Below, piece after piece: positions 1 to 64,000 of a stretch of 64,000 bases of DNA. Location: NCBI RefSeq assembly GCF_964204645.1, contig NC_134036.1:4866600-4930599 (forward strand), in the 5' to 3' direction. The position numbers were made by a program, and so were the translations under genes. The stretch is from Tubulanus polymorphus (lineage: Eukaryota; Animalia; Nemertea). How positions within the stretch are numbered: the first letter of the stretch is position 1; each line of letters begins with the position of its first letter. The notes beneath the pieces are model-generated. The model made no database searches, was not told the origin of the DNA, and saw only the letters and a program-made list of their open reading frames with translations.

Positions 1-3000
1 TACCAGGACTTGTGTTTTATAGTTTAAGACATGAGAACCTCAGGTTTGAGGTGAAATATTACATACCGACATTTCAAATACAATACACATTAGAACAGTC
101 GATACGGGTAAAACAGTTTAAAAATGTCTGTAAATCAGGATTTTTAGATTCGGGAATTTCATGCGTAAAATACATCAGAGATGAACGTCTGAATTGGGAG
201 AATGCTGAATTGTACTGTAGACAGAAGTACGCGGGACATCTACTCAGTATCAACTCACAACAGGAAATGATTTCTATTAAAAGATTATTCGCTACAAAGC
301 TTCTTCTAAAGGCATATTCACAGATAGCGCTCATAATGATGATTGGATTAAAACGGCAAGTAAGTCATGAAATAAGTCATTAGAAAGTTTGTATATAAGA
401 ATTTGATGTTATGTTTAATCACGTGTTTGCAACTTAATTTTTCAGCCCGTTTCTGGTTATTACACTTGGACTGATGGAAAACCATTGAGCTACACAGAGT
501 GGTATAAACCTACAAACAACGACACGATACCAGACGTTATTCAAGGATTGATATCTCCTCTTAGAAAACAACCGATAAATGACGTCAATATGCCGTGTAC
601 GGCGATGATACTGAATAATCCACGAGGATCAGCGAACTGGGTTCGATTCCCCTGCGAAATCGAAGAGGTTCATACGAGTTTCATTTGCGAAACTGAAAGA
701 ATTTTTATCGAAAATAGAACAGCAACAAAGTGGAATGTAACCAAAAACGACACATTTCTGATACGGGAAAATGCATTTCAAGATATTAAATTCAATGAAT
801 CGAGCTGTACGATTGGTTTAATAAGCATAGACAGACAATGCTATCTCTTACTAACGGACTGGAACACACATCGAGGTCTTGATATAAAAACTGCGACAGA
901 GATGTGTAATGGCGTCCGGGCCGAAGTAGGTAGTATTAAAATTAATATTCAAAAAGATATCTTAAATTTGATAACAGCATTTCAATATGAACATCAATAT
1001 AGCTCTATACTAACGATAAGGTCTAATGACAGACTGCAAGTTATAAACCCAATAATCACCAGAGATGAAATTACTTATATTCAATCAGTTAAATGGATGA
1101 TGAAACATTTTGATAATGCGACAGATACAGCGCATTCTGTTTTGTGTTCATACAATGTAACTGATGAAGAGTTAACTTCTATAAGCGGTTGTAAATCGTG
1201 GCAGTTTAAATGTAACGATCAAAGATGTATCAGCGACCATCGCGTATGTGATACCAGACACGACTGCCAACACGGTGGAGATGAACTCAATTGTACGGAT
1301 ATAAATTTCCACAGTCAGTTTCAATGCTATGATGGTCAAGTGATATCAATAAGTGGTTTCTGTGATTTCATACAAGATTGTGCGGATGGTTCTGATGAGG
1401 AATCTTGTATTCATCCCCCGTGTTTGTCAGAACAATTTCGCTGCACAAGTGGTCAATGTTTCAGTAGGTCAAACAGATGTGATGGAGTCACTGATTGTAA
1501 AGACGGATCAGATGAAATGGGATGCACTACTGAAATGTGTCAGGGGTTCCTGTGTAACAGTGGAGACTGTATTAGTTCTCAGTTATATCAGGATGGTGTC
1601 GTGGATTGTAGTGGAAGCCTCGAAGAAGATGAATTAGTAACAACTACTAATGTTACAGTGAATCCTACTGTTCAGTGCAATGATGAAAACTACTGCACGA
1701 CTAACTTCACCAATCTCTGTACGGAATCAGATGAACAAAGGTGTTCTTTCAATTCTCCTCACTGTTATTCAAGACGTCACAGATGTATTCTAGAAAGAAT
1801 GACAAATGGTTCCCCAGTTTGTAGAAATCTCGAGCACGTATTGAGATGTGAAGAATTTGATTGTCCAGCTGGTACTGTAAAATGTCCAGCATCGTACTGT
1901 ATACCGATCAGACAGGTGTGCGATGGTCAATCAGATTGTCCTTATTCAGAAGATGAACAAAACTGCGAGACATTTTCATGTCCAGGAATGTTTAAATGTG
2001 GTCAGGAAAATCGGTGTATTCCACAATCTGAAGTTTGCGACGGGGTCGTCAATTGTAAACATACAACTGATGACGAGGCTTTATGTAACGTCACGTGTCC
2101 GATGGGCTGTAGATGTCAAGGTAATTTGATTGATTGTGCGAATGCTCGTTTAAAAGATGTGACTGGTCTTTTCTCGACATCAAGTCGAGTTTTAATTCTG
2201 TCGAATAACAGAATCATTCTGAGCGAGTCGACGTTTTCTTTAGTCGTTTATCTTCGAATGCTTAACATCTCTTTCAATGAATTGTCTTATATTTTACCGA
2301 ACTCGTTCACAAACCTGCATAATTTACATACATTAGACCTTACATACAACAACATCACATCATTATCCACAAACACATTCATCGGGTTGTATAATTTAAA
2401 AGAGTTATTGATAACTGAAAATCCACTACGCCATTTAGAGGACAATACCTTCCAAGATTTAATGTCATTACAATTTCTGGACCTTCAAGGGCTTTCAATT
2501 TTGCTGCTTGGTAGAGATTTATTTAGAGGTTTATCTGCATTACAGTCGTTGGATATTAGCAGTAACAGAATCCATCATATTTCACGTAATGCTTTTTCAG
2601 GATTAAATGAACTTAGAATTCTCGATATCACCAATAACTCTAAATTTATTTTGACTGAGACAGGCGTTTTCGATAATCTAACATCATTAGTCTCGTTAAC
2701 GTCTGATGCTTACAAATTTTGTTGCATGGCTCCGAATGTTGACCAGTGTCTTCCTGAAGCTGATGAATTTTCCTCCTGTTCTGATCTGATGGGTAACACA
2801 ATCCTCAGAGCTATCATCTGGATCATCGCTTCATTTAGTTTCTTCGCGAACAGTATCGTCATTTTATTTCGTCTTCGATCAATTAGACTTTCATCCTCCG
2901 AAAAGCGCAACACATCCTCTGACATCCTCATTATCAATATCGCAGCTTGTGATTTTCTGATGTCGATTTATTTGTTTTCGATTGCGGGTGCAGATTATAT

Positions 3001-3697
3001 TTATAAAGGAGATTATTTCCTAAACTCTGAAACTTGGACGGATAGTTCATTGTGTAGTTTCGCCGGAGTCACGGTGACTATTTCTTGTGAAGGCTCGTTG
3101 ACGTTTCTATTCATTCTTACACGGCAAAGATTCTCGAATATCGTTAACCCATTTTCTGGAAGCCCGATTAGATCACCGAGATATGTGTCGATTATTTGTG
3201 GCATGTGTTGGGTTATTATAAGCACAATCTCTATAATACCGCTGTCACAATTATCTTATTTCGGTATTAAATTCTACGGTACTACTGGAGTTTGTTTACC
3301 TATGAATTTAATATCGATCGATGTCAACGCCTGGCAATATTCATTCGCTATTTTTGCGGTATTCAACTCGTTCATACTCGCTACGATAATGGCGACTTAT
3401 GCACAAATGTACAGACTCGTATCTGGAAGCAGGACAGGTTCGGGTAGAATCGATCCTACGGAACTGGTTTTAGCACGAAGAAGTTTGGTGATAAATCTTT
3501 GTAATTTATTTTGCTGGCTGCCGTTAATTATCGTTCAGTTTTGCGCGGTATTACGGGTAGAAATACCGAATCAGGTGGCGGCTTGGCTGGCTGTTCTTTT
3601 CTTACCGATCAACTCGTCCCTCAATCCCCTTCTTTACACAATACTGACTATCGATATGAAATCAATACGAGCCAAAACTAAACGCTTTCGGCAATAA
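1..3697 (+). CDS. Copy 1 (5' truncated by the window): CUB/C-type lectin/LDLa/LRR GPCR, GRL101-like
   Basis: Exons <1-359 and 446-3697; intron 360-445 (GTAAGT...TTTTTCAG, 86 bp, phase 0). Shows LDLa motifs (CDGxxDCxDGSDE), LRRNT CPMGCRC, LxxLDLxxNxI repeats, hinge FCC...FSSCSDLM, and a 7TM with CWLP and NPLLY. Confidence 0.92.
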
Positions 3698-3698
3698 A
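3693..3698 (+). terminator. Candidate AATAAA polyadenylation signal overlapping the stop codon (copy 1; also copies 2-4 and 6-8)
   Basis: CAA TAA A forms AATAAA. It is retained as TAATAAA in copies 6 and 8 and absent in copy 5. The AT-rich context makes chance occurrence possible. Confidence 0.3.
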
Positions 3699-5352
3699 TG
3701 TTTCAAACAGTCTTAACGCATTGATCTGGCAAATATTATCGGGTTGTCCTATCTAAGCTCAAGAATTGTTATTTTTAATTGTACGTTCGAGTATTAAAGT
3801 TCACACATTTCACCCGAAATCATGCCCTCTCTGCAAGATGCGTCCGAAAACTATAGACAATATTGGAATTTTAAACATGATATTAAACCTGAGCGAACGA
3901 AGTTATCAGAATATTTCTGAAATATAATCGGGCGTGGGTATTAACGACACGTGGATACGATGGAACCGAAAATTCATTTAGAATTGGATAAGAAATGTGG
4001 TGCGAATATCAAATTGCCCAAAATTACCGCGAGATGTTGAACCTGTAATTTTTTATTTTACCTGCTAATTCGGGTTCCTGAAAATAAAAGATGAATTGAC
4101 CTCGTAAATACTCGGCGCATCATTAGAGTTGGTAAAATTCTAAGCCGTCATGTTTGAAACATTTAACCAAATCTTTACTTTATATCTAATATAAGATAGC
4201 GAATATTTCGTTTCCTCTTGATCTCAATCGAATGCGAAATTTCGTTTTAAGAAAAAAAATAATTCTTTTCACAATGCGCGGGGGAGTATAGAATAGATTT
4301 TTATATCGCAAACACTTTCGTTTTGGATTCCTCACTTTGACCGTACGTACCAGTAACGTTAAGATAATAAATAGGTCAAGAGATTTTAGGGCGTTTTTCA
4401 ACCAGTGTTGTTTATAAGTAACGGTAAATTTCATTTTTATAGGAAATTGATTTTTGCCCAGACTCGAGCTACCCACTCGCCAGTCGTTAACCGGTGGATC
4501 TGTCTTTCAATTACGAATAAATTTTAATACAGCCTACAAAGTATTTTACAGAACTGAATTGGATTGGAGAATGTTTAAGCAGAAAGTTACCAATTATGTT
4601 TTTGGTCTAAAGAAAAACCCAGACGAATTTGACACAACATCCAACTATGACATATCCTATCGATTTCCAATGACAAACACGAACCCGCTGTTTTATTGAT
4701 TTCTTGGTTTTATAACTCATTAATCTAATTAACATTAAACTAACCGATCGAACGAGTAAGAAGGGCAATACATATTTCAAGATCGAAAACTTAAAAACGC
4801 GGTTTGCGAATTCGCGAAAACGGCGTCTTAGTAACGCGTAAAGTAACGCGCTACGACTGGATTGAACTCACGCCAGTCGCCGATTTTCAAAACGGTTAGA
4901 ATCCTGAAACCGAGCGATGCGTATAAACTGCGATTCCAATAATATTCATAAAGTCGAATTTTGTCGGACGGTCGAGCGAAAATATATATTCGACTAGCTA
5001 ATGAAATATTAATTTAAAAATAAAATAGGCAAACGAACGACACGGAATAATTGGGATATTTTTATATATAATTGGACATGGATATTTACCGCGCCTAAAG
5101 GAAATGTGAAACGTGAAAATTGCTGCACAGATTGATGGTAATTACTGGAGAACTCGTTCGAAAGTAATGTCAACGTTTGAAAATATATTTGTACCCTGAA
5201 TTTGCTGATTGCAGCAAACGAATACTAAGAAATCTCAAATGCTCCATCATTAATGGAGAGAACTTGAAGATAGAAAGTAATGTGAAAAGGCGATCAGTGA
5301 TTGAAATAACAACTTTAGAATCTGGAATGAATTTCAACGTTGTGTCGTGTTG

Positions 5353-8300
5353 ATGTTGTTCGGTATGGAGCAGCGACTGAGAGCGCTGTTTATAGCGTCG
5401 CTGATCGTCTGTCAAGTTCGCATCGCGCGCGCTGATCGCGCAGACTCTATCGAGGAATCGTCTGTGACGGTAAGTTCGTCTTGTAACAACACGTGGTACC
5501 CGCTAGATTCTACGTCCGGTTACATCGTTTCACCGAATTACCCTTCGTTAACGCGCGGCGTTGAATGTCGTTGGTTCATCAACAGTTCTTTTACGGGGAC
5601 TTTTCACGTCCAAGTTTACTACGATATTGGGCTTTCAATATTCTGTAGTGATAACTACCTTCTCGTTTACGAGTCTGAAAATAGATTGTGCGGTGTTGGA
5701 AAACATGAAATCCGCCGTAACGATTCGATCTCGTTGATGTTTAGGTGTAACGTCGATGGTGCGCGAGGTAGTCGGGTTTATGTCATATATAGTTATGAAC
5801 CAAGCCGATTGAAAATCAGTCACGACTGTTTAAGACACAATATAAGATTGGGGAGGCTAAAAGCTGAGCAGGGTTACAAATACACCGTAGGAAAAATAAT
5901 GAATTGCCAGTTATTTGTTGAATGGAGCGGCATGCCGCGAGGTTATGCGTTGAATCTAACATTTATTGATACAACTTTTAGATTCTATTATGGTTGGAAA
6001 TCATTGTCGGTAACCATGAAAATACACGACGGTTGGAACACCAGCAATGAACCTTTAGCGCATATACCACACCAATCTGGACATCCAGCATCATCATTTT
6101 ATACAAAAACAAACAAAGCTGTTTTGGTGTCACTGCTGACACATCTACAGTCACTGCTTTTAGTACAGACGTATAGAATATCTGATTGGAACGTCTCTAA
6201 TCCGTTGATTCAGGTTTCTAATAACGAGTCGGGAGTGATCGTTCCCGATGACAACAGTTTACACGTAATAACACGATCAAAACACTTACACTGCTGGTCT
6301 ATCACAGTGCAGGTGTTACAGTACGTCGTCTTCAACTGGACACGTGATCTCATCACATCCGGTGACGTCATCGGTGTATATAAACAAGAAGGGTTACGCG
6401 TTGTAGGAACTGCTATTTCACTCGGTAACAACTACCTGGAATCGCTGAGTGTCAAATCTGAAGGCTTTCTCGTCATACTGTGCATTTTGAGAGCAGGCGT
6501 CCGCAAAAATGCGAGATTTGAAATAAACTATAAGATTGAATCTATTTCGATAGATGATTTAAAGGTCATCGACCGTGAGGTGAGTATCACCTGTGAAATA
6601 ATTTTACCTCGTATTGAAATAAACTGAAATTATTAAGAATAAAAACTGTCTGATATACTCGAAATATTGGCTAAATCTAGGTACCGGTGAACCAGATGTT
6701 TTCTAAGACGCCGTTCGCGCTGTTTCCAAAACGAATGAAAATCGTTGTGAATTATCGCGTCAGCAGATATGATTTTAAATGGAAAGTTGATATCTATGAA
6801 GAAAATATGGAACTAACAGTTTTGTCAGAGAACTGCGAGCGAGCTGGATTTTACATATACGACGGTGGTAATTTCACGGCTAGACGATACGGTCCGTATT
6901 GTCCTCGTTTATACGCCCCGTACGACCGTAACGTCGTCAGTCTGATTACATCGGGTGGCTCGGTTACTGTAGTAGAATACGCTTATAACTGGGATGATCA
7001 GTTAACAGTCGGTAAAATATCATATCTCAGATTTCGTCCTACCGACTGTGACGGGTATGTTTTAAAGGAAGGAGAACGTAAGATCAATATGACGTCACAC
7101 TGTCTCGTGATAACACCGGAAAATCGACCCCTACCTTTGAGAAATATTAATATATTATCAGAACACGAATATCAAATTGACCGATGTTTTCAGGATCATC
7201 GATCTTTTGGTTCTTGTAGCAGGTATCTGGCATTGAGTAGTCAGGTTCTTAATAACGGTCTCGTATTAAACACTGTGAAAATACGTGTGACGAATGTATT
7301 CTGGTTGTATTCATTATTAGTTAAACTACGGCGTAAATGTCAACGATCGAAGGTAGTTGCAGGGGGTATTGACCAGACACCACTGAATGATAATTGCGGA
7401 ATCATTCAGTCACCAAACTACCCGGGATCAGCAGGGCACACCAGAGAAGCATTAATATATAGTTTTCTACATAAGAATTTTCAGCGAATTCGATATTACA
7501 GATTTGTAATCAAATATACTGAAATAATACAATGTGAGAAAACAAAATCGTCAGACAAGAACCCGATTATGATAACGCAATCTATTACTGATACAACTAA
7601 CGGTCAAAGACACCAACACGAAAATAGAATATGTGACAATAACGCGATACCGGGACTTGTGTTTTATAGTTTAAGACATGAGAACCTCAAGTTTGAGGTG
7701 AAAAATTACATACCTACATTTCAAATACAATACACATTTGAACAGTCGTTACCGGTAAAACAGTTTGAAAATGTCTGTAAATCGGGATTTCTAGATTCGG
7801 GAATTTCATGCGTTAAATACATCAGAGATGAACGTCTGAATTGGAAGAATGCTGAATTGTACTGTAGACAGAAGTACGCGGGACATCTACTCAGTATCAA
7901 CTCACAACAGGAAATGATTTCTATTAAAAGATTATTCGCTACAAAGTTTCTTCTAAAGGCATATTCACAGAACGCGCTCATAATGATGATTGGATTAAAA
8001 CTGCAAGTAAGTCATAAAATAAGTCATATGAAACTTTGTATATAAGAATTTGGGGTTATCTTTAATCACGTGTTTGCAACTTAATTTTTCAGCAAGTTTC
8101 TGGTTATTACACGTGGACTGACGGGAAACCATTGAGCTACACAGAGTGGTATAAACCTACAAATAACGACACGATACCAGAAGTTATTCGAGGATTGATA
8201 TCTCCTCTTAGAAAACAACCGATAAATGACGTCAATATGCCGTGTACGGCGATGATACTGAATAATCCACGAGCATCAGCGAACTGGGTTCGATTCCCCT

Positions 8301-11300
8301 GCGAAATCGAAGAGGTTCATACGAGTTTCATTTGCGAAACTGAAAGAATTGATATCGAAAATAGAACAGCAACAATGTGGAATGTAACCAAAAACGACAC
8401 ATTTCTGATACGGGAAAATGCATTTCAAGATATTAAATTCAATGAATCGAGCTGTACGATTGGTTTAATAAGCATAGACAGACAATGCTATCTCTTACTA
8501 ACGGACTGGAACACACATCGAGGTCTTGATATAAAAACTGCGACGGAGATGTGTAATGGCGTCCGGGCCGAAGTAGGTAGTATAAGAATTAATATTCAAA
8601 AAGATATCTTAAATTTGATAACAGCATTTCAATATGAACATCAATATAGCTCTATACTAACGATAAGGTCTAATGACAGACTGCAAGTTATAAACCCAAT
8701 AATCACCAGAGATGAAATTACTTATATTCAATCAGTTAAATGGATGATGAAACATTTTGATAATGCGACAGATACAGCGCATTCTGTGTTGTGTTCATAC
8801 AATGTAACTGATGAAGAGTTAACTTCTATAAGCGGTTGTAAATCGTGGCAGTTTAAATGTAACGATCAAAGATGTATCAGCGACCATCGCGTATGTGATA
8901 CCAGACACGACTGCCAACACGGTGGAGATGAACTCAATTGTACGGATATAAATTTCCACAGTCAGTTTCAATGCTATGATGGTCAAGTGATATCAATAAG
9001 TGGTTTCTGTGATTTCATACAAGATTGTGCGGATGGTTCTGATGAGGAATCTTGTATTCATCCCCCGTGTTTGTCCGAACAATTTCGCTGCACAAGTGGT
9101 CAATGTTTCAGTAGGTCAAGCAGATGCAATGGAATCACTGATTGTAAAGACGGATCAGATGAAATGGGATGCACTACTGAAATGTGTCAGGGGTTCCTGT
9201 GCATCAGTGGAAACTGTATCAGTTCTCAGTTGTATCAGGATGGTGTCGTGGATTGTAGTGGAAGCCTCGAAGAAGATGAATTAGTAACAACTTCTAATGT
9301 TACAGTGAATCCTACTGTTCAGTGCAATGATGAAAACTACTGCACGACTAACTTCACCAATCTCTGTACGGAATCAGATGAACAAAGGTGTTCTTTCAAT
9401 TCTCCTCACTGTTATTCAAGACGTCACAGATGTATTCTAGAAAGAATGTCAAATGGTTTCCCAGTTTGTAGAAATCTTGAGCACGTACTGAGATGTGAAG
9501 AATTTGAATGTCCAGCTGGTACTGTAAAATGTCCAGCATCGTACTGTATACCGATCAGACAGGTGTGCGATGGTCAATCAGATTGTCCTAATTCAGAAGA
9601 TGAACAAAACTGCGAGACATTTTCTTGTCCTGGAATGTTTAAATGTGGTCAGGAAAATCGGTGTATTCCACAATCTGAAGTTTGTGACGGTTTCGTCAAC
9701 TGTAAACATACAAAAGATGACGAGGCTTTCTGTAATGTCACGTGTAAGAAGGGCTGTAGATGTCAAGGTCATTTGATTGATTGTGCGAATGCTCGTTTAA
9801 AAGATGTCACTGGTCTTTTCTCGACATCGAGTCGAGTTTTAATTCTGTCGAATAACAGAATTATTCTGAGCGAGTCGACGTTTTCTTTATTCGTTTATCT
9901 TCGAATGCTTAACATCTCTTCCAATGAATTGTCTCATATTTTACCGAACTCGTTCACAAACCTGCATAATTTACATACAATAGATCTTACATACAACAAC
10001 ATAACATCATTATCCACAAACACATTCATCGGGTTGTATAATTTAAAAGAGTTATTGATAACTGAAAATCCTATACGCCATTTAGACGACAATACCTTTC
10101 AAGATTTAAAGTCATTACAATTTCTGGACCTTCAAGGGCTTTCAGTTTTGCTACTTGGTAGAGATGTATTTAGAGGTTTATCTGCATTACAGTCGTTGAA
10201 TATCAGCAGTAACAGAATCCATCATATTTCACGATATGCTTTTTCAGGATTGAATGAACTTAGAATTCTTGACATAACCAACAACTCTAAGTTCATTTCC
10301 ACAGCAAGAGGAGTTTTCATCAATCTGACATCATTAGTCTCGCTAACGTCTGACGCTTACAAATTTTGCTGCATGGCTCCGAATGTTGACCAGTGCCTTC
10401 CTAAAGCTGATCAGTTTTCCTCATGTTCTGATCTGATGGGTAACACAGTCCTCAGAGCTATCATCTGGGTCATCGCTGCGTTCAGTCTCTTCGCAAACAC
10501 GATTGTCATTTTATTTCGTCTTCGATCAATTCAACTTTCGTCCTCCGAAAAGCGTAACACATCCTCCGATATCCTTATTATCAATATCGCAGCTTGTGAT
10601 TTTTTGATGTCGATTTATTTGTTTTCGATCGCGGGTGCGGATTACGTTTTTAAAGGAGTTTATTTCTTGAATTCTGAAACTTGGACGGACAGTTCATTGT
10701 GTAGTTTCGCCGGAGTCACGGTGACTATTTCTTGTGAAGGCTCATTGACGTTTCTATTCATTCTAACACGGCATAGATTCTCGAATATCGTTAACCCATT
10801 TTCTGGAAGCCCGATTACATCACCGAGATATGTGTCCATTATTTGTGGCGTGTGTTGGGTTATTATAAGTACAATCTCTATAATACCGCTGTCACAATTA
10901 TCTTATTTCGGTATTAAATTCTACGGTACTACTGGAGTTTGTTTACCTATGAATTTAATATCAATTGATGTCCACGCCTGGCAATATTCATTCGCTATTT
11001 TTGCGGTATTCAACTCGTTCATACTCGCTACGATAATGACGACTTATGCGCAAATGTACAGACTCGTATCTGGAAGCAGGTCTGGTTCGGGTAGAATTGA
11101 CCCTACCGAACTGATTTTAGCACGTAGAGGTTTAGTGATAAATCTGTGTAATTTATTTTGCTGGCTACCGTTAATTATCGTTCAGTTTTGCGCGGTATTA
11201 CGGGTAGAAATACCGAATCAGGTGGCGGCTTGGCTGGCGGTTCTTTTCTTACCGATCAACTCGTCCCTCAATCCCCTTCTTTACACAATACTGACTATCG

Positions 11301-11344
11301 ATATGAAATCAATACGAGCAAAAACAAAACGCTTACGGCAATAA
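5353..11344 (+). CDS. Copy 2: CUB/C-type lectin/LDLa/LRR GPCR, GRL101-like, ~1934 aa
   Basis: Exons 5353-6579, 6681-8006, 8093-11344; introns 6580-6680 (GTGAGT..CTAG) and 8007-8092 (GTAAGT..TTCAG), both phase 0 and frame-restoring. Alternative ATG at 5365. Signal-peptide-like MEQRLRALFIASLIVCQVRIARA; CUB motif GYIVSPNYP...CRWFI; lectin motifs W..A..YC...GHLLSI..MIGL | WTDG..Y..W..C...W...C...FICE. Confidence 0.9.
6580..6680 (+). other. Intron 1 (copy 2, representative), phase 0
   Basis: GAG|GTGAGT donor and CTAG|GTA acceptor. A GTCTGATA branch-point-like motif about 30 nt upstream of the AG is kept in all 8 otherwise divergent intron-1 variants. Confidence 0.85.
8007..8092 (+). other. Intron 2 (copy 2, representative), phase 0, interrupting the C-type lectin domain
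   Basis: CAA|GTAAGT donor and TTTTTCAG acceptor. Removing it joins MIGLKLQ to QVSGYYTWTDG and rebuilds the canonical lectin WIGL...WxDG spacing. Confidence 0.92.
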
Positions 11345-41900: not shown

Positions 41901-41910
41901 CTTACGTTAA
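35951..41910 (+). CDS. Copy 6: CUB/C-type lectin/LDLa/LRR GPCR, GRL101-like, ~1928 aa
   Basis: Exons 35951-37177, 37265-38590, 38677-41910; introns 37178-37264 (87 bp) and 38591-38676 (86 bp). Confidence 0.9.
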
Positions 41911-49500: not shown

Positions 49501-49563
49501 TACACAATACTGACTATCGATATGAAATCAATACGAGCCAAAACTAAACGCTTTCGGCAATAA
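43590..49563 (+). CDS. Copy 7: CUB/C-type lectin/LDLa/LRR GPCR, GRL101-like, ~1930 aa
   Basis: Exons 43590-44816, 44912-46240, 46327-49563; introns 44817-44911 (95 bp) and 46241-46326 (86 bp). Confidence 0.9.
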
Positions 49564-49959: not shown

Positions 49960-49983
49960 AATTGACCTCGTAATTGACCTCGT
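49960..49983 (+). repeat. 12-bp tandem duplication AATTGACCTCGT x2, specific to the spacer between copies 7 and 8
   Basis: Read directly; single copy at the equivalent position in the other spacers. Confidence 0.85.
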
Positions 49984-51245: not shown

Positions 51246-54200
51246 ATGTTGTTCGGCATGGAACAGCGACTGAGAGCGCTGTTTATAGCGTCGCTGATCG
51301 TCTGTCAAGTTCGCATCGCGCGCGCTGATCGCGCAGACTCTATCGAGGAATCGTCTGTGACGGTAAGTTCGTCTTGTAACAACACGTGGTACCCGCTAGA
51401 TTCTACGTCCGGTTACATCGTTTCACCGAATTACCCGTCGTTAACGCGCGGTGTTGAATGCCGTTGGTTCATCAACAGTTCTTTACAGGGGACTTTTCAC
51501 GTCCAAGTTTACCACGATATCGAGCTGTCAATATTCTGTAGTGATAACTACCTTCTCGTCCACGAGTCTGATAACCGATTGTGCGGCGATGGAAAATATG
51601 AAATCCGCCGTAACGATTCGATCTCGTTGATGTTTAGGAGTAACGTCGATGGTGCGCGAGGTAGTCGGGTTTATATCATATATCATTATGAACGAAGTCA
51701 AATTAATATTCTTCACGACTGTTCAAGGTACGATTTAATATTAAAGAGGCTAAAAGCTGAGCGGGGTTATGAATTCGCGATTCATAAATTACGTAATTGC
51801 AAGTTGTTTGTTGAATTGAGCGGGATGCCGCGAGGCTATGCGATGAATCTTACATTAATTGATATAGATTTCAAATCCTATCATGTTGGGGAGTCGTTAA
51901 CGGTGGCCATAAGACTCCACGACGGATGGAACACCAGTAGTGATCCTTTCGCTTTTATACCACAACAATCTGGACATCCACCTTCATCATTTTATACTAA
52001 AACTAACAAAGCTGTATTCTTTTTACGGAAGATACATGTCCAGTTAAAGCTTTTAGTTCAGACGTATAGAATATCGGATTGGAACGTATCTAATCCGTTG
52101 ATTCAGATCTCTAATAACGAATCGGGAGTGCTCATTCCCGATGACAACAGTTTACACGTAATAACTCGATCGAAACACTTACACTGCTGGTCTATCACAG
52201 TGCAGGTGTTACAGTACGTCGTCTTCAACTGGACACGTGATCTCGTCACATCAGGTGACATCATCGGTGTATATAAACTAGAAGGGCTACCCATTTTAGG
52301 AACTGATGTTTTACTCGGTCACAACTACCTGCAATCACTGAGTGTTAAATCTGAAGGCTTTCTCGTCATACTGTGCGTTTTAAAAACAACAGTTCACGAT
52401 GATGTAAGATTTGAAATAAGCTATAAATTGGAATCTATTTCGATAGACGATATCAAGGTCAACAACATTCGGGTGAGTATTACCTCTGTAATTATGTTAC
52501 CCCTTATCGAAATAACATATATTATCAAAAATCTGTCTGATAAACTTATTATTGGCGAACTTTAGGTACCCGTGAACCGAATGCGGTTTTTGATGCCATT
52601 CTGGCTGTTTCCGAAACAAAAAAAAGTATCGGTAAATTATCGCATCACTAGATACGAGTTTAAATGGAAAGTAGATATTTATGAAGAGAAAATGGGACTA
52701 ACGGTTTTATCAGAGAACTGCGAGCGAGCTGGATTTTACATATTCGACGGTGGTAATTTCACGGCTAGACGATACGGTCCGTATTGTCCTCGTTTATACA
52801 CCCCGTACGACCGTAACGTCGTCAGTCTGATTACATCCGGCGGGTCGGTTACTGTAGCAGGATACGCGTATAACTGGAATGATCAGTTGACCGTTGAAAA
52901 AGAATCATTTCTGAGATTTCGCCCTACCGACTGTGACGGGTACATCCTCCGGGAGGGAGAACAGCGGGTCGATATGACTTCACACTGTCTCGTGATTACA
53001 CCCGAAAACCGACGCCTTCCTTTGAGAAACATCTACATATTATCAGAACACGAATATCAAATTGACCGATGTTTTCAGGGTGCTATACCATTCGGTTCAT
53101 GTGGATCGTACGTTAGCTTGAGTAGTCAGTTGCTCAATAACAGTCTCGTATTAAACACTGTGAAAATGCGAACCCCGAGTTTATTCTGGAATTATTATTT
53201 GATGGTTGAACTTCGGAGTAAATGCCAAAAATTGAAATCTGCCGTTATAGAAATACTGGGTGGGAGGGTATTTGAAGATGAATGCGGGTTGTTGCAATCA
53301 CCAAATTATCCGGGATTATCTGAGTATCAACATGAACCACTTTATTATAACTATCCTCAAGTGGTCAGACGGGGCAAATTTTCCTACCACCGGTTTCTAA
53401 TCAAATACATAGACAGGGTACTGTGCACGAAATCGGGTGTGAGTGACAAAGATCCGATTATCTACAAACAATCGATACATGAATCGCACAGTAGAAAAAT
53501 CACACATGAGCATAGAATATGTGACAATAACGCGATACCGGGACTTGTGTTTTATAGTTTAAGAGATGACAGGGTGTGGTTTGAGGTGAAACGTTATATC
53601 CCGACATTTCAAATACAATACACATTAGAACAGTCGTTACCGGTAAAACAGTTTGAAAATGTCTGTAAATCAGGATTTATAGATTCGGGAATTTCATGCG
53701 TAAAATACATCAGAGATGAACGTCTGAATTGGGAGAATGCTGCATTGTACTGTAGACAGAAGTACGCGGGACATCTACTCAGTATCAACTCAGAACAGGA
53801 AATGATTTCTATCAAACGATTATTCGCAACAGAACTTCTTCTAAATGCCTATTCACAGAAAGCGCTCATAATGATGATTGGATTAAAAATGAAGGTAAAA
53901 TTCTTAATTTCTAAATCTATCTCGTTAAAAGAAATTTATATACAATTATGATGTTTTAATCATGAATTTGCCACTTAAACTTTTAGTCTACTTCTGGTTC
54001 TTACACGTGGACTGATGGGAAACCATTGAGCTACACGGAGTGGTATCAACCTACAAATAACGACACGATACCAGAAGTTATTCAAGGATTGATATCACCT
54101 CTAAGAAAACAACCGATAAATGACGTCAATATGCAGTGTACGGCGATGATACTGAATAATCCACGAGGATCAGCGAACTGGGTTCGATTCCCATGTGAAA

Positions 54201-57200
54201 TCGAAGAGGTCCACACGAGTTTCATTTGCGAAACTGAAAGAATTGATATCGAAAATAGAACAGCATTAATGTTGAACATAACCAAAAACGACACATTTCT
54301 AATACGGGAAAATCCATTTCAAAATATTGATTTCAATGAATCGAGCTGTACATTTGGTTTGGTAAGAATAGACAGACAATGCTATCAAATACTGACAGAC
54401 TGGAACACACATCGAGGTCTTGATATAAAAAGTGCGACAGAGATGTGTAATGGCGTCCGGGCCGAAGTAGGTAGTACAAACAGTAATACTGAAAAAGATA
54501 TCTTAAATTTGATAACAACATTTCAATATCAACATCAATATAGCTCTCTACTAACGATGACTTCTTATGACACACTGCAAGTTATAAACCCAATAATCAG
54601 CAGAGATGAAATTACTTATATTCAATCACTAAAATGGATGATGAAACAGTTTGATAATGCGACAGATACAGCGCATTCTGTTTTGTGTTCATACAATGTA
54701 ACTGATGAAGAGTTAGCTTCCATAAGTGGATGTAAATCGTGGCAGTTTGAATGTAACGATCAAAGATGTATCAGCGACCATCGCGTATGTGATACCAGAC
54801 ACGACTGTCGACACGGCGAAGATGAACTGAGTTGTTCGCATATCAATTTACACAGTCAGTTTCAATGCGATGATGGTCAGGTTATATCAATAAGTGGTTT
54901 CTGTGATTTCATACAGGATTGTGTGGATGGTTCTGATGAGAAATCTTGTTTTCATCCCCCGTGTTTGTCTGAACAATTTCGCTGCAAAAGTGGTCAATGT
55001 TTCAGTAGGTCAAACAGATGTGATGGAGTCACTGATTGTAAAGACGGATCAGATGAAATGGGATGCACTACTAAAATATGTCAGGGGTTCCTGTGTAACA
55101 GTGGAGACTGTATTAGTTCTCAGTTATATCAGGATGGTGTCGTGGATTGTAGTGGAAGCCTTGAAGAAGATGAATTAGTAACAACTACTAATGTTACAGT
55201 GAATCCTACTGTTCAGTGCAATAATGAAAACTACTGCAAAACTAACTTTACAAATCTCTGTACGGAATCAGATGAACAAAGATGTTCTTTCAATTCTCCT
55301 CACTGTTATTCAAGACGTCACAGATGTATTCTAGAAAGAATGTCAAATGGTTTCCCAGTTTGTAGAAATCTTGAGCACGTACTGAGATGTGAAGAATTAG
55401 ATTGTCCAGCTGGTACTGTAAAATGTCCAGCATCGTACTGTATACCGATCAGACAGGTGTGCGATGGTCAATCGGATTGTCCTAATTCAGAAGATGAACA
55501 AAACTGCGAGACATTTTCTTGTCCAGGAATGTTTAAATGTGGTCAGGAAAATCGGTGTATTCCCCAATCTGAAGTTTGTGACGGTTTCGTCAACTGTAAA
55601 CATACAAATGATGACGAGGCTTTCTGTAATGTCACGTGTAAGAAGGGCTGTAGATGTCAAGGTCATTTGATTGATTGTGCGTATGCTCGTTTAAAAGATG
55701 TAACTGATCTTTTCTCGACATCAAGTCGAGTTTTGATTCTATCGAATAACAGAATCATTCTGAGCGAGTCGACGTTTTCTTCATTCGTTTATCTTCGAAT
55801 GCTCAACATCTCTTTCAATGAATTGTCTTATATTTTACCGAACTCGTTCACAAACCTGCATAATTTACACATATTAGATCTTACATACAACAACATAACA
55901 TCATTATCCACAAACACATTCATCGGGTTGTATAATTTAAAAGAGTTATTGATAACTGAAAATCCTTTACGCCATTTAGACGACAATACCTTCCAAGATT
56001 TAATGTCATTACAATTTCTGGACCTTCGAGGGCTTTCAGTTTTGCTGCTTGGCAGAGATGTATTTAGAGGTTTATCTGCATTACAGTCGTTGGATATTAG
56101 CAGTAACAGAATCCATCATATTTCACGTTATGCTTTTTCAGGATTAAATGAACTTAGAATTCTCGATATCACCAACAACTCTAAATTTATTTTGACTGAG
56201 ACAGGCGTTTTCGATAATCTAACATCATTAGTCTCGTTAACGTCTGATGCTTACAAATTTTGTTGCATGGCTCCGCATGTTGACCAGTGTCTTCCTGAAG
56301 CTGATGAATTTTCTTCTTGTTCTGATCTGATGGGTAACACAGTCCTCAGAGCTATCATCTGGGTCATCGCTTCATTTAGTTTCTTCGGGAACAGTATCGT
56401 CATTTTATTTCGTCTTCGATCAATTCGACTTTCATCCTCCGAGAAACGTAACACATCTTCTGATATCTTAATCATCAATATCGCAGCTTGTGATTTTCTC
56501 ATGTCGATTTATTTGTTTTCGATTGCGGGTGCAGATTACATTTATAAAGGAATTTATTTCCTAAATTCTGAAACTTGGACTGGCAGTTCATTGTGAAGTT
56601 TCGCCGGAGTCACGGTGACTATTTCTTGTGAAGGCTCATTGACGTTTCTATTTATTCTAACACGGCAGAGATTCTCGAATATCGTTAATCCATTTTCTGG
56701 AAGCCCGATTACATCGTCGAGATATGTGTCCATTATTTGTGGCGTGTGTTGGGTTATTATAAGTACAATCTCTATAATACCGCTGTCACAATTATCTTAT
56801 TTCGGTATTAAATTCTACGGTACTACTGGAGTTTGTTTACCTATGAATTTAATATCAATTAATGTCCACGCCTGGCAATATTCATTCGCTATTTTTGCGG
56901 TATTCAACTCGTTCATACTCGCTACGATAATGGCGACTTATGCGCAAATGTACAGACTCGTATCTGGAAGCAGGACAGGTTCGGGTAGAATCGATCCTAC
57001 CGAACTGGTTTTAGCACGAAGAAGTTTGGTGATAAATCTTTGTAATTTATTTTGCTGGCTGCCGTTAATTGTCGTTCAGTTTTGCACGGTATTACGGGTA
57101 GAAATACCGAATCAGGTGGCGGCTTGGCTGGCGGTTCTTTTCTTACCGATCAACTCGTCCCTCAATCCCCTTCTTTACACAATACTGACTATCGATATGA

Positions 57201-57235
57201 AATCAATACGAGCAAAAACAAAACGCTTACGTTAA
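51246..57235 (+). pseudogene. Copy 8: GRL101-like receptor with a premature stop after TM2 (pseudogene or truncated ~1721-aa 2-TM form)
   Basis: Exons 51246-52472, 52566-53894, 53987-57235. In-frame TGA at 56594-56596 where copies 1-7 have TGT (the Cys of SSLC). The frame continues intact to the normal stop at 57235. Confidence 0.8.
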
Positions 57236-58909
57236 TAAATGTTTTAAACAGTCTAAACGCTTTTATCCGTCAAATATTATCGGGTTGTCCTATTTAAGCT
57301 CAAGAGTAGTTTTCATTTTGATTATTCGTTCATAAAGTTCACACATTTCACCCCAAATCATCCCCTCTCTGCAAGACGCGTTGGGAACTATAGAAAATAT
57401 TGGAATTTTAAACATGATATTGATTTCTCAAAAACCCTGGCGAACGAAGTTATCAGAATATTTCTGAAATATAATTGGGCGTGGGTATTAACGACACGTG
57501 GAAACGATGGAACCGAAAATTTATTTAGAATTGGATAAGAAATGTGGTGCGAATATCAAATTGCCCAAATTACCGCGAGATGTTGAACCTGTTATTTTTC
57601 ATTTTACCTGCTAATTCAGCTTCATAGAAATAAAAGATGAATTGACCTCGTAAATACTCAGCGCATCATTAGAGTTGTTAAAATTCTAAGGCGTCACGTT
57701 TGAAACATATAGCTTAATCTTTTCTTTCATTTCTTAATATAAGATAGCGAATATTTCGTTTTCTCTTTAAGATATCAATCGAATGCGGAATTTTAGTTAA
57801 AAAATAATGATTGTTTTAACAAAGCGCGAGGGAGTAGAGAATAGATTTCTATATCGCAAACACTTTCTTTTCGGATTCATCACTTTGACCGTACGTACGA
57901 GTGACGTTAAGATAATAAATAGGTCAAGAGATTTTAGGGCGTTTTTCAACCAGTGTTGTTTATAAGTAACGGTAAATTTCATTTTTATAGGAAATCGATT
58001 TTTGCCCAGACTCGAGCTACCCACTCGCCAGTCATCAACTGGTGGATCTGTCTTTCAATTACGAATAAATGTAAATACAGCCTACGAAGCATTTTACAGA
58101 ACTGAATTGGATTGGAGAATGTGTACGCTGAAAGTTACCAATTACGTGTTTGGTATAATGAAAAACCCAGACGAATTAACATCCAACTATGATATATCCT
58201 ATAGATTTTCAATTACAAACACGAACCCGCTGTTTTATTCCCGGTATGTTCGATCTCTTTATTTTATAACACATTAATCTAATTATCCTAACATTAAACT
58301 AACCGATCAAACGAGTAAGAAGGGCAATACATATTTCAGGATCGAAAACTTCAAAACGCGGTTCGTGAATTCGCGAAAACAGCGTCTTAGTAACGCGTAA
58401 AGTAACGCGCTACGACTTGTTTGAACTCACGCCAGTCGCCAATTTTCAAAACGGTCAAAATCCCGAAACCGAGTGATACGTATAAACTGCGATTCCAATA
58501 ATAATCATAAAGTCGAATTTGTCGGAAGGTCGAGCGAAAATATATATTCGACTAGCTAATGAAATATTAATCTAAAAATAAAATACGTAAACGAACGGAA
58601 CGAAATAATTGGGATATTTTTATGTATAATTGGACATGAATATTTACCGCGCCTGAAGGAAACGTGAAACTGAAAATTGCTGAACAGATTGATGGTAATT
58701 ACTGGAGAACTCGCTCGAAAGAAATGTCAACGTTTGAAAATATATTTGTACCCTGAATTTGCTGATTGCAGCAAATGAATAGTAAGAAATCTAAAATGCT
58801 CCATCATTTATGGATAGAACATGAAGATAGAAAGTAACGTGAAAAGGCGATCAGTGATTGAAATAATAACTTTTGAATCTGGAATGAATTCCATCGTTGT
58901 GTTGTGTTG

Positions 58910-61900
58910 ATGTTGTTCGGTATGGAACAGCGACTGAGAGCGCTGTTTATAGCGTCGCTGATCGTCTGTAGAGTTCGCATCGCGAGCGCTGATCGCGCAG
59001 ACTCTATCGAGGAATCGTCTGTGACGGTAAGTTCGTCTTGTAACAACACGTGGTACCCGCTAGATTCTACGTCCGGTTACATCGTTTCACCGAATTACCC
59101 TTCGTTAACGCGCGGTGTTGAATGTCGTTGGTTCATCAACAGTTCCCTTCCGGGAACTGTTCATCTCCAAGTTTACTACTACATCGATCCGTCAATATTC
59201 TGTAGTGATAACTACCTTCTCGTCTACGAGTCTGAAAACAGATTCTGCGGTTATGGAAAACGTGAAATCCGCCGTAACGATTCGATCTCGTTAATGTTTA
59301 TGAGTAACGTCGATGGTAGGCGAGGTAGTCGGGTTTATATAACATATCGCTATGAGCGAAGTCCGTTGAAAATCAGCCACGTCTGTCTACGGTACAATAT
59401 AAGATTGGCGCGGCTAAAAGCTGACCGGGGTTTCAAGTTCGTTATTGAAAGACTTCAGAATTGCCAGTTGATTCTAGAATGGATCGAAATGCCGCGAGGT
59501 TATGCAATGAATATCACATTAATTGATGTAGTTCTAATATCAAATCAAATTTGGTCAGTATCAATTGAATTGTACGACGGTTTGAACACCAGCAGTGAAC
59601 CTATAGGTATTATACGAGAACAAACCGGACATCCGCCTTCGTCATTTTATACTAAAACAAATAAAGCAACCATATCTTCGATTCATCGGTATCCAGCAAG
59701 TCAATTCAAGCTTTTAGTCCGGTCGTATAAAATATCAGATTGGGACGTATCCAATCCGTTGATTCAAATCTCGAATAACGAGTCGGGAGTGCTCATTCCC
59801 GATGACAACAGTTTACACGTAATAACTCGATCGAAACACTTACACTGCTGGTCTATCACAGTGCAGGTGTTACAGTACGTCGTCTTTAACTGGACACGTG
59901 ATCTCATCACATCCGGAAAAGTCATTGGCGTATACAAACAAGAAGGGTTACGCGTTGTTGAAACTGATATTTTACTCGGTTACAACTACCTGCAAACACT
60001 GAGTGTCAAATCTGAAGGCTTTCTCGACGTTTTGTGCGTTTTAAAAACAACGGTCGACGTGAATGTGAGATTTGAAATAAACTATAGGATGGAATCTCTT
60101 TCGATATATGATATAAAGGTCATAAACCAGGTAAATATCACCTGTGAAATTTTGTTATCCCGTATCGATACGACTTGAAATCATTTAAGATAAAAACTGT
60201 CTGATATGCTTGTAATATTGGCCAACTCTAGGTACCAGTGTACCGAATGTGGTTTATGACGCAAGACTCGCTGTTTCCAAAACGAAATAAAGCCTCGGTG
60301 AATTATCGCGTCACTAGATACGAGTTCAAATGGAAAGTTGATATCTATGAAGAGAATATGGAACTAACAGTTTTATCTGAGAACTGCGAGCGAGCTGGAT
60401 TTTACATATTCGACGGTGGTAATTTCACGGCTAGACGATACGGTCCGTATTGTCCTCGTTTATGGACATACGGCCGTAACGTCGTCAGTCTGATTACATC
60501 AGGTGGATCGGTTACTGTAGTAGGATACGCTTATAACTGGGATGATCAGTTAACAGTCGGTAAGATATCATATCTCAGATTTCGTCCTACCGACTGCGAC
60601 GGGTATGTTTTAAAGGATGGAGAACATCGGATCAATATGACGTCACACTGTCTCGTGATAACACCGGAAAATCGACGCCTTCCTTTGAGAAATATAAATT
60701 TATTATCTAAACACGAATATCAAATTGACCGATGTTTTCAGGATCATCTATCTTTTGGTTCTTGTACAAGATATCTGCGATTGAGTAGTCAGGTTCTTAA
60801 TAACAGTCTCGTATTGAACGCTGTGAAAACACGTGTGACGTATGTATTCTGGCTCCATCCCTTATTAATTGAACTACGACGTAAATGTCAACGATCGAAG
60901 AAAGTTGCAGTATTTGGGGCTATCGACCAGTCACCACTGAATGATAATTGCGGAGTCATACAGTCACCAAACTACCCGGGATCAGCAGGGCACACCAGAG
61001 AAGCATTAATATATAGTTTCCAGAGTAGGAACATTCAGCGAATTGAGTATTACAGATTTGTAATCAAATATACTGAAAAGATACGCTGTGAGAAGGCATG
61101 GTCAGGCGACAAGGACCCGGTTATGATAACGCAATCTGTTACTGATACAACTAGCGGTCAAACACATCAACACGAAAATAGAATATGTGACAATAACGCG
61201 ATACCGGGACTTGTGTTTTATAGTTTAAGAGATGAGAACCTGTGGTTTGAGGTGAAAAATTACATACCGACATTTCAAATACAATACATACTAGAACAGC
61301 CGATACCGGTAAAACAGTTTAAAAATGTCTGTAAATCGGGATTTTTAGATTCGGGAATTTCATGCGTAAAATACATCAGAGATGAACGTCTGAATTGGGA
61401 GAATGCTGAATTGTACTGTAGACAGAAGTACGCGGGACACCTACTCAGTATCAACTCACAACAGGAAATGATTTCTATTAAAAGATTATTCGCTACAAAG
61501 CTTCTTCCAAAGGCATATTCACACAGAGCGCTCATAATGATGATTGGATTAAAACTGCAAGTAAGTCATGAGATAAGTCCTAAGGAAGTTTGTATATAAG
61601 AATTTGATGTTATGTTTAATCACGTGTTGGCAACTTAATTTTTCAGCCCGTTTCTGGTTATTACACGTGGACTGACGGGAAACCATTGAGCTACACAGAG
61701 TGGTATAAACCTACAAATAACGACACGATACCAGAAGTTATTCGAGGATTGATATCTCCTCTCAGAAAACAACCGATAAATGACGTCAATATGCCTTGTA
61801 CATCGATGATACTGAATAATCCACGAGGATCAGCGAACTGGGTTCGATTCCCCTGCGAAATTGAAGAGGTTCATACGAGTTTCATTTGCGAAACTGAAAG

Positions 61901-64000
61901 ATTTGTCAACGAAAATAGAACAGCAACCATGTGGAATGTAACCAAAAACGACACATTTCTATTTCAAAATACTGATTTCAACGATTCGAACTGTACGATT
62001 GGTTGGGTAAACATAGGTAAACAATGCTATCAAATACTGACAGATTGGAACAGACATCGAGGTCTTGATTCAAAAACTGCTACAGAGATGTGTCATAGCA
62101 TCGGATCTGATATGGGCAAAATATTCCGTAACACAGAAAATGACATCTTAAATTTGATAAAATCATTTCAATATCAACATCAATATAGCTCTATACTAAC
62201 GATGACTTCTTATGACACACTGCAAGTTATAAATCCAATAATCACCAGAGATGAAATTACTTATATTCAATCAATAAAATGGACAATGAAACAGTTTGAT
62301 AACGCGACAGATACGGTGCATTCTGTTTTGTGTTCCTACAATGTAACTGATGAAGAGTTGGCTCTTATAAGCGGTTGTAAATCGTGGCAGTTTGAATGTA
62401 GCGATCAAAGATGTATCAGCGACCATCGCGTATGTGATACCAGACACGACTGTCAACACGGTGAAGATGAAATGAGTTGTTCGCATATCAATTTACACAG
62501 TCAGTTTCAATGCGATGATGGTCAGGTTATATCAATAAGTGGATTTTGTGATTTCATACAGGATTGTGTGGATGGTTCGGATGAGGAATCTTGTATTCAT
62601 CCACCGTGTTTCTCTGAACAATTTCGCTGTGAAAGTGGTCAATGTATCAGTAGATCAAGTAGATGTGATGGAGTCACTGATTGTAAAGACGGATCAGATG
62701 AAATGGGATGCACTACTGAAATGTGTCAGGGGTTCCTGTGTAACAGTGGAGACTGTATTAGTTCTCAGTTATATCGGGATGGTGTCGTGGATTGTAGTGG
62801 AAGCCTCGAAGAAGATGAATTAGTAACAACTACTAATGTTATAGTGAATCCTACTGTTCAGTGCAATAATGAAAACTACTGCACAACTAATTTCACAAAT
62901 CTCTGTACGGAATCAGATGAACAAAGATGTTCTTTCAATTCTCCTCACTGTTATTCAAGACGTCGCAGATGTATTCTAGAAAGAATGACAAATAGTTTCC
63001 TAGTTTGTAGAGATCTTGAGCACGTATTGAGATGTGAAGAATTTGAATGTCCAGCTGGTACTGTAAAATGTCCAGCATCGTACTGTATACCGATCAGACA
63101 GGTGTGCGATGGTCAATCAGATTGTTCTAATTCAGAAGATGAACAAAACTGCGAGACATTTTCTTGTCCAGGAATGTTTAAATGCGGTCAGGAAAATCGG
63201 TGTATTCCCCAATCTGAAGTTTGTGACGGTTTCGTCAACTGTAAACATACAAATGATGATGAGGCTTTCTGTAATGTCACGTGTCCTACTGGCTGTAGAT
63301 GTCAAGGTCATTTGATTGATTGTGCGAATGCTCGTTTAAAAGATGTAACTGATCTTTTCTCGACATCAAGTCGAGTTTTAATTCTATCGAATAACAGAAT
63401 CATTCTGAGCGAGTCGACGTTTTCTTCATTCGTTTATCTTCGAATGCTCAACATCTCCTTCAATGAATTGTCTCATATTTTACCGAACTCGTTCACAAAC
63501 CTGCATAATCTACATACATTAGATCTTATATACAACAACATAACATCATTATCCACAAACACATTCATCGGGTTGCATAATTTAAAAGAGTTATTGATAA
63601 CTGAAAATCCTATACGCCATTTAGACGACAATACCTTCCAAGATTTAATGTCATTACAAATTCTGAACCTTCAAGGGCTTTCAGTTTTGCTGCTTGTTAG
63701 AGATGTATTTAGAGGTTTATCTGCATTACAGTCGTTGGATATTAGCAGAAACAGAATCCATCATATTTCACGATATGCTTTTTCAGGATTGAATGAACTT
63801 AGAATTCTCGATATCACCAACAACTCTAAATTTATTTCGACAGAAAGAGGCGTTTTCGATAATCTAACATCATTAGTCTCGTTAACGTCTGATGCTTACA
63901 AATTTTGTTGCATGGCTCCGAATGTTGACCAGTGTCTTCCTGAAGTCGATGAATTTTCCTCCTGTTCTGATCTGATGGGTAACACAGTCCTCAGAGCTAT
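58910..64000 (+). CDS. Copy 9 (3' truncated by the window at the start of TM1): CUB/C-type lectin/LDLa/LRR GPCR, GRL101-like
   Basis: Exons 58910-60130, 60232-61560, 61647->64000; introns 60131-60231 (101 bp) and 61561-61646 (86 bp). Exon 3 appears open to the window end (...FSSCSDLMGNTVLRA). Confidence 0.88.

Follow-up and report, generated by a model that had tools for sequence, protein, structure and literature searches.

Old ectodomain cassettes in a probably homogenised tandem array of GRL101-like receptor genes of the nemertean Tubulanus polymorphus

The stretch of DNA analyzed here (64,000 nucleotides, in the following called the window) covers positions 4,866,600-4,930,599 of contig NC_134036.1 (C12) in the 268-Mb assembly of Tubulanus polymorphus. 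It is located in the middle of a tandem array of genes for giant type-C LGR (GRL101-like) receptors. Most of the repeat unit is closely similar from copy to copy, spacers included, whereas a few discrete blocks of the extracellular part (ectodomain) are strongly diverged. This distribution of differences along the unit points to old cassettes lying within a unit that gene conversion or unequal crossing-over has homogenised. The interpretation favored here, with a probability of roughly 0.6, is that the homogenised array with its retained old cassettes provides a repertoire of orphan cell-surface G-protein-coupled receptors (GPCRs) sensing external or non-self ligands.

The window forms a direct repeat with a unit of 7.61-7.70 kilobases (kb; about 7.65 kb), as measured by the spacing of a recurrent conserved 80-mer at the end of the large open reading frame (ORF). 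Its plus strand carries 24 ORFs of at least 250 amino acids (aa), which follow each other as a repeating triplet of 425, 450 and 1070 aa. The 7.65-kb period was not detected by Tandem Repeats Finder, for which the longest period was 500. According to open frames, consensus splice sites and conservation across units, each unit harbors one gene of three exons (409+442+1083 codons, 1,934 aa) with two short phase-0 GT..AG introns. All searches and tests were made exon by exon. A first-pass annotation of the window had reported at least nine tandem copies, and this number was confirmed: nine copies are present, seven whole and two truncated at the window ends, and with the flanks included the full array comprises 17 direct copies at about C12:4,818,400-4,946,780. 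The copies in the window and their reference gene model are:

1-3697, plus strand: 3' part of copy G07 (U0), with the end of exon 2 at 1-359, intron 2 at 360-445 and exon 3 at 446-3697, from unit alignment and splice-site mapping
3698-5352, no strand: intergenic spacer of about 1.65 kb, repeated between all copies
5353-11344, plus strand: copy G08 (U1), the reference model of 1934 aa, with exon 1 at 5353-6579, exon 2 at 6681-8006 and exon 3 at 8093-11344
6580-6680 and 8007-8092, plus strand: intron 1 (101 nucleotides, nt; GTGAGT..AG) and intron 2 (86 nt; GTAAGT..AG) of G08, phase 0
13025-18986, plus strand: copy G09 (U2), intact, cassette type d
20603-26597, plus strand: copy G10 (U3), intact, with a type b cassette; differs very little from G11 and G06
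28215-34206, plus strand: copy G11 (U4), intact, cassette type b
35951-41910, plus strand: copy G12 (U5), intact, cassette type d
43590-49563, plus strand: copy G13 (U6), intact, cassette type d
51246-57238, plus strand: copy G14 (U7), with a type a cassette and, at 56594-56596, a premature TGA
58910-64000, plus strand: copy G15 (U8), truncated by the window end, sole copy of cassette type e

The divergence along the gene is strongly non-uniform, as had been described in the first-pass annotation. Mean identity in 200-nt windows is 73-81% at about 5780-6170, 6571-6770 and 7171-7560, and 94-97% over most of exon 3; the proportion of nonsynonymous differences (pN) reaches 0.15-0.30 in the variable blocks, compared to 0.01-0.06 in the rest of the gene. 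These blocks comprise aa 141-280 of exon 1, aa 1-30 and 166-340 of exon 2, and a milder one at aa 83-195 of exon 3. Several details of the earlier description have to be modified accordingly. The differences are indeed concentrated in the ectodomain, but the N-terminal CUB region that had been called variable starts with a signal peptide and a first CUB domain (CUB1) that share 96-99% aa identity in the array and are among the most conserved parts, so that the variable parts are internal. The blocks had also been considered barely alignable; in fact they align almost gap-free, and even the worst 20-residue windows retain 52-63% mean identity in the array. Downstream of the CUB region only scattered residues were said to differ, which is true for most of exon 3 but not for the third, milder block.

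The same blocks are hypervariable among 20 paralogs that were sampled from other arrays, with 22-45% identity between conserved islands of 85-95%; for exon 2 aa 1-30 identity is 0.67 within the array and 0.39 among these outside paralogs. The position of the variability is therefore a property of the family. The exon 1 block is a cassette that falls into discrete types, of which the window contains four and the whole array five. Each of them is passed on as a single unit without recombination, and the flanking segments split the copies differently.

The blocks were also compared at synonymous sites. The proportion of synonymous differences (pS) is 0.27-0.54 in the blocks versus 0.08-0.25 elsewhere, an increase of 2-4 fold. 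Cassette types b and d differ from each other with a pS of 0.63 and a pN of 0.32; pS is 0.14 in exon 3 aa 196-1083 and 0.03-0.05 within a cassette type. As pS is raised, the blocks are mainly older and not faster. The spacers show a mean p-distance of 0.12-0.16 among copies, and spacers and introns together reach 0.12-0.20, which is similar to the synonymous sites of the constant part.

Trees were calculated for the 17 array copies together with the 20 outside paralogs. In those of the exon 1 cassette and of the exon 2 block, copies of the array are distributed over several deep clades that are mixed with outside genes, and monophyly of the array was rejected by approximately unbiased (AU) tests (p=2e-7 for the exon 1 cassette, p=1.6e-8 for the exon 2 block). 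In the tree of exon 3 aa 240-1083, 16 of the 17 array copies form one short-branched clade (SH-aLRT 95). Individual copies switch partners along the gene: G14 groups with G01 and the genes on contig C8 in exons 1-2, and with G12 in exon 3. The first-pass annotation had interpreted the conserved part as a constant signalling module. The pattern itself is correct, but this part is about as alike within the array as the introns and spacers are, and it forms an array-specific clade; its similarity therefore points to recent homogenisation and not only to design.

These comparisons indicate that unequal crossing-over and gene conversion keep the 7.65-kb unit largely uniform within the array, which applies to the spacers as well. 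The discrete ectodomain blocks have escaped this homogenisation; they represent a few old cassette lineages that are common to other arrays and are reshuffled among the copies, and selection on each lineage is purifying to relaxed. Hypermutation targeted to the blocks was set aside as an explanation, as the types are discrete and cluster with paralogs of other arrays. The locus is also a clear case of concerted evolution beside retained ancient variation within one gene. In clustered protocadherins, MHC and KIR genes and plant NLR clusters, gene conversion homogenises most of the gene and spares those ectodomain parts that determine specificity. The Tubulanus array would share with these systems a constant part in concerted evolution and variable segments that are old, discrete and reshuffled. 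It differs from them in fold and signalling, and each Tubulanus unit harbors its own complete constant region instead of using shared constant exons.

The divergence of the blocks might also have been driven by positive selection on binding surfaces, as would be expected for a recognition system (immune, allorecognition or gamete) in an arms race. In agreement with this, the variation is confined to the ectodomain and affects the same blocks family-wide, and pN/pS rises from 0.05-0.4 elsewhere to 0.45-0.8 in the blocks. The codon models M0, M1a and M2a were applied in an own implementation, for which codon trees were taken from IQ-TREE and their relative branch lengths kept fixed; the values of omega (dN/dS) are:

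Exon 1 cassette: omega (M0) 0.39; M2a versus M1a p=0.59; no class above 1, 67% of sites with omega 0.21
Exon 2 block: omega (M0) 0.51; 2dlnL=17.4, p=1.7e-4; 2.8% of sites with omega 4.3 (codons 269 and 297)
Exon 3 block: omega (M0) 0.77, the highest of the three; 2dlnL=9.1, p=0.011; three candidate codons

M2a is thus preferred over M1a in the exon 2 and exon 3 blocks, and a related gene cluster of Biomphalaria is located in a parasite-resistance region (PMC12297450). However, this preference depends on two to three codons per block, and because recombination inflates M2a tests these sites are candidates only. Pervasive positive selection was not found in the variable parts: a positive class comprises about 3% of the codons in two blocks and is absent from the exon 1 cassette, which is the most divergent block. 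The first-pass annotation had expected dN/dS values not far below 1 in the variable blocks, an expectation that largely failed with block-wide values of 0.39-0.77. Furthermore, synonymous divergence is increased together with nonsynonymous divergence, so that age explains most of the difference, and the variability is not biased towards loops. Positive selection therefore concerns no more than a handful of codons. Taken together, the blocks show relaxed constraint and do not look like targets of an arms race, which makes such a recognition system an unlikely explanation of the array.

The product of G08 is a type-C LGR (GRL101-like) receptor of 1,934 aa. It consists of a signal peptide, a CUB domain, a CUB-like region, a C-type-lectin-like domain, about six LDLa modules, leucine-rich repeats (LRRs) and a rhodopsin-type seven-transmembrane (7TM) domain. 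Pfam matches and the kinship to Haliotis proteins described below support the earlier view that this is a GRL101-like (LDLa-LRR-7TM) family which has expanded in tandem and also contains CUB and lectin-like modules. The features of G08 are:

5353-5433, plus strand: signal peptide, about the first 27 aa of exon 1, read from the sequence as a hydrophobic N-terminus with a helix modelled at aa 2-19; near-invariant
5482-5772, plus strand: CUB1, exon 1 aa 44-140 (start approximate), Pfam CUB; conserved
5773-6186, plus strand: hypervariable cassette of exon 1, aa 141-278, putative CUB-like beta-sandwich from an AlphaFold2 model and structural matches
6681-6770, plus strand: variable start of exon 2, aa 1-30, pN 0.16
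7176-7700, plus strand: variable block of exon 2, aa 166-340, with a second 'SPNYP' CUB-type motif at aa 243-248
7776-8338, plus strand: likely C-type-lectin-like domain, aa 366-442 of exon 2 plus aa 1-82 of exon 3, split by intron 2
8339-8836, plus strand: ectodomain segment without fold assignment, exon 3 aa 83-248 (about 165 aa), with the variable block at aa 83-195
8837-9733, plus strand: LDLa region of about six modules, exon 3 aa 249-547, Pfam Ldl_recept_a 116.9 bits in five stretches, and cysteine pattern
9743-10327, plus strand: LRR N-terminal cap and repeats, exon 3 aa 551-745, Pfam LRR_8 98.1 bits (three stretches) and LRR_4 30.5 bits
10448-11290, plus strand: rhodopsin-type 7TM domain, exon 3 aa 786-1066, Pfam 7tm_1 76.2 bits (cut-off 30.5), E=3.7e-21

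The Pfam CUB profile (PF00431) matches exon 1 aa 51-133 with 27.1 and 27.4 bits in G09 and G15 and with 16.9-20.6 bits in G08 and G14 (cut-off 21.4). When a profile of exon 1 was compared with 1.84 billion representative proteins, only multi-CUB proteins were recovered, and these only via positions 40-145; aa 145-409 had no protein match in this search. About 800 residues are not recognized by Pfam, namely aa 135-409 of exon 1, aa 1-365 of exon 2 and aa 83-248 of exon 3. An AlphaFold2 model of the cassette, based on 27 family sequences, shows an all-beta sandwich (predicted local distance difference test, pLDDT, 76-88). Its top structural matches are the CUB domains of enteropeptidase, cubilin, TMPRSS6, neuropilin, TSG-6 and C1s (Z 7.1-7.7, root-mean-square deviation 3.0-3.4 over 90-103 aa); these Z values are middling, and cupins rank next with 6-6.8. 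Foldseek matches comprise PCPE-1, C1r/C1s and cubilin (E about 2e-4 to 1e-3). A language-model search indicated CUB for the unassigned part of exon 1 (0.94) and for exon 2 (0.88), which are leads only. According to the model, a CUB-like fold of the cassette is likely but not certain. The modelled beta-sandwich segment coincides exactly with the hypervariable cassette of exon 1.

The approximately 450 aa that follow the cassette are probably further CUB-like sequence. A profile-profile comparison of exons 1 and 2 recovered the 19-residue SPNYP motif only. The exon 2 profile had no match among proteins of 0.55-1.75 times its length, and an AlphaFold2 model of exon 2 from eight window copies reached a pLDDT of 30 and was not used.

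This domain organization also bears on the possibility that the diversity has no functional meaning and is a neutral by-product, the blocks being weakly constrained stalk parts that drifted apart in the ancestral family and remain distinct only as diverged DNA is a poor substrate for gene conversion. Omega is raised in the blocks, as relaxation would predict, but two thirds of the cassette codons have an omega of about 0.2 and pN/pS within types is 0.4-0.6. Strands and loops are equally variable and each cassette is passed on as one unrecombined unit, which drift could explain; the block borders, however, match a folded domain, and islands of 85-95% identity persist between the blocks family-wide. 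Similarly, the lack of detectable homology of exon 1 aa 145-409 and exon 2 outside this genome, which would suit a loosely constrained stalk, has to be weighed against reading frames that stay open over 5.8 kb in 14 of 17 copies. Distinct domains under constraint agree better with this pattern than free drift does, and a neutral origin without functional meaning is considered quite improbable.

For the lectin-like domain, the first half scores 18.6 bits with Pfam Lectin_C (cut-off 22.6) and matches snaclec chains in PDB with E=0.004, each half alone being sub-threshold, and the translation of the second half contains W.W.DG and the closing Cys motifs. The sequence thus suggests that a C-type-lectin-like fold is likely. 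Ca2+-dependent sugar binding, on the other hand, appears doubtful because KPT and WVR are found where EPN/QPD and WND would be. The following segment, exon 3 aa 83-248, had no Pfam match and no sequence match in PDB. Behind the LRRs a Cys-rich hinge extends up to 10447. The 7TM domain shows seven hydrophobic segments, CWLP in transmembrane segment (TM) 6 and NPLLY in TM7. The motif in TM3 is LTRHRF at 10763-10780; across the family, H or Q takes the place of the acidic E/DRY residue and the arginine is retained. Four relatives that were compared, from Haliotis and prawn and including the protein P0004, read (I)T(L/V)ER(F/L/V) at the equivalent position, so that E is present.

The best matches of exon 3 outside this genome are proteins named 'GRL101-like' from Haliotis, Macrobrachium and Palaemon (31-37% identity, E from 1e-125 to 1e-146), with 37% identity and E=1.7e-146 for Haliotis. 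The GRL101-like GPCRs of lophotrochozoans and crustaceans, among them Haliotis cracherodii P0002, Macrobrachium P0005 and, by description, Lymnaea stagnalis GRL101, share LDLa modules, LRRs, a Cys-rich hinge and the 7TM domain with the Tubulanus receptors, and P0002 also contains CUB domains. The Tubulanus proteins differ from them by an N-terminal extension of about 850 aa in which only the first CUB domain is recognizable by sequence, by the lectin-like domain, by HRF or QRY instead of ERF in TM3 and by their hundreds of copies. Database proteins that combine CUB with LDLa, LRR and 7TM exist with or without a lectin domain (P0002, P0004). P0004 originates from another source and has the order CUB-lectin-LDLa-LRR-7TM; BLASTP detected no similarity between it and exons 1 and 2.

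The genome was also analyzed for further members of the family. The 7TM query had 126 scored matches of at least 78% identity (of 495 candidates) and the exon 1 query 102 scored matches of at least 66% (of 374 candidates), and a degenerate pattern of the CUB1 motif occurred at 307 places compared to one for the reversed control. The family thus comprises at least 300 genes, is lineage-specific and is organized in many tandem arrays, which are located on contigs C12, C6, C9, C5, C8, C10 and C11. The three-exon organization is found in each of the 20 outside genes sampled, and five of them are disrupted: L013, L015, L019 and L028 by frameshifts or stops, and L017. In L017 (C12:3740100-3747750) exon 3 aa 364-803 (approximate borders) are deleted, so that parts of the LDLa region, the LRRs and TM1 are lost. 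In three read sets, the conserved segments reach a summed contig word depth of about 1e4 and the variable blocks one of 2e2-8e2 (20-100 fold less), which independently fits hundreds of paralogs sharing the conserved segments.

Within the array, 14 of the 17 copies are fully open. G08 begins with ATG and is free of internal stops. The three disabled copies comprise one with a frameshift and one with a stop in exon 2, both defects being located outside the window, and G14. Exon 3 of G07 has 1083 open codons, and the stop codon in its exon 2 lies upstream of the window. The TGA of G14 is codon 870 of exon 3, near TM3, and represents the only defect within the window; the rest of the gene is open. 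This copy might be a young pseudogene, a null allele or the result of a sequencing error, and is likely one of the first two.

In light of these stops and the frameshift, it was considered whether the array is a decaying series of pseudogenes or an artefact of mis-assembled haplotypes, for which the failure to find RNA evidence in the runs examined could also be cited. However, 14 copies keep 1,934 open codons and the constant part has a pN/pS of 0.24, which is not expected for a dead repeat. Differences of 5-25% between the copies occur in ordered blocks, and the genes on either side of the array are normal and unique. Contigs from three read sets reproduce the type-specific cassettes with 2-7 mismatches in 358-440 nt, although these sets may share the specimen of the assembly. 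Both variants are thus extremely improbable. The three runs that contain the locus behave as DNA, as their contigs cross intron 1 unspliced.

In some invertebrates GRL101-like receptors have repeatedly turned out to be the GPCRs with the strongest expansion, and those of snails have been connected with chemosensation and parasite resistance. Apple snails (Ampullariidae) possess 29-132 tandem GRL101 genes that are expressed in tentacles and labial palps (PMC6573481). This expansion resembles that of Tubulanus in being a lineage-specific burst of GRL101-type genes via tandem duplication, and it was read as environmental sensing. The Tubulanus family belongs to another phylum and is larger (about 300 or more genes), and a cassette mosaic is undescribed for the snails. 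In Biomphalaria sudanica, the region SudRes2, identified by genome-wide association with schistosome resistance, harbors 12 CTL-LDL-LRR GRL101-like GPCRs (PMC12297450). These share with the Tubulanus receptors a C-type-lectin-like domain in front of LDLa, LRR and 7TM, form a dense cluster with truncated members and were proposed to be recognition receptors; they differ in having a single LDL domain and no CUB region, and in a density of 12 genes in 440 kb compared to 17 genes in 128 kb. GRL101 expansions are thus already known from snails. New in Tubulanus are the phylum, the scale, the long N-terminal extension without detectable sequence relatives and the cassette mosaic.

By analogy with the proposals for the snail expansions, the function of the Tubulanus receptors is most likely the sensing of external or non-self ligands, either chemosensory or immune. 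Different CUB-like cassettes would provide different extracellular binding surfaces on a common LDLa-LRR-7TM transducer, and the family would grow and decay by birth-and-death evolution. Its at least 300 paralogs in tandem arrays, with disabled members in the array (3/17) and outside of it (5/20), correspond to a chemosensory-type repertoire. A more far-reaching proposal can be made tentatively: with no fewer than 300 giant receptors, no larger LGR family may be known, with old specificity-type cassettes that are kept by selection against homogenisation and reshuffled by gene conversion into a GPCR-based combinatorial recognition repertoire. If true, this would be an analogue of clustered protocadherins or NLR clusters that signals via a G-protein-coupled receptor.

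Several points weigh against a sensory repertoire with retained old cassettes. Old cassettes may be retained without selection for diversity, as blocks that have diverged are by themselves resistant to gene conversion. None of the three blocks reaches an omega of 1, and the site-model test is home-made and ignores recombination within blocks, which inflates its M2a results. Cassette variability does not differ between loops and strands of the model (p=0.98), giving no sign of a tuned binding site, and about 800 aa of the ectodomain are without a confident fold (exon 1 aa 279-409, exon 2 aa 1-365, exon 3 aa 83-248). The replacement of the acidic E/DRY residue by H or Q may result in atypical signalling or altered basal activity. 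RNA evidence was sought in read runs and not found; a single probable RNA run under the same species label had no match, which is no proof of silence. To our knowledge type-C LGRs have remained orphans without a known ligand since 1994, and we know of no ligand, cell type or G-protein coupling for any of them. Cassette types on an otherwise identical receptor provide a natural experiment, in which swaps could reveal the ligand-binding part, and tissue expression could settle smell versus immunity for such families.

The array is flanked by ordinary genes on both sides:

L001:1456-2064, minus strand: Tctex-1 ORF upstream of the array
L001:7360-8358, plus strand: intronless rhodopsin-type GPCR of 333 aa upstream of the array
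L005:4050-5054, plus strand, and L005:7421-8425, minus strand: inverted pair of tubulin ORFs downstream of the array

A second array of the same family is located upstream at C12 about 4,758,000-4,795,000, on the minus strand and head-to-head at a distance of about 23 kb. Its nearest gene (L013) belongs to a cassette clade that is shared with types c and d. Contig C8 contains four single copies that are 0.4-1.1 Mb apart, L010 (C8:2351100-2358700), L011 (C8:1210250-1217850) and two at about 3.17 and 3.57 Mb. L010 and L011 are 96.8% identical over 6.3 kb. An origin of the C8 genes as retrocopies was rejected, as both introns are kept. L010 and L011 are sister to the array in exon 3 and carry cassette type a, as do G01 and G14. 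The first 1 kb of the array spacer is 88-91% identical to the 3' flank of the C8 paralogs.

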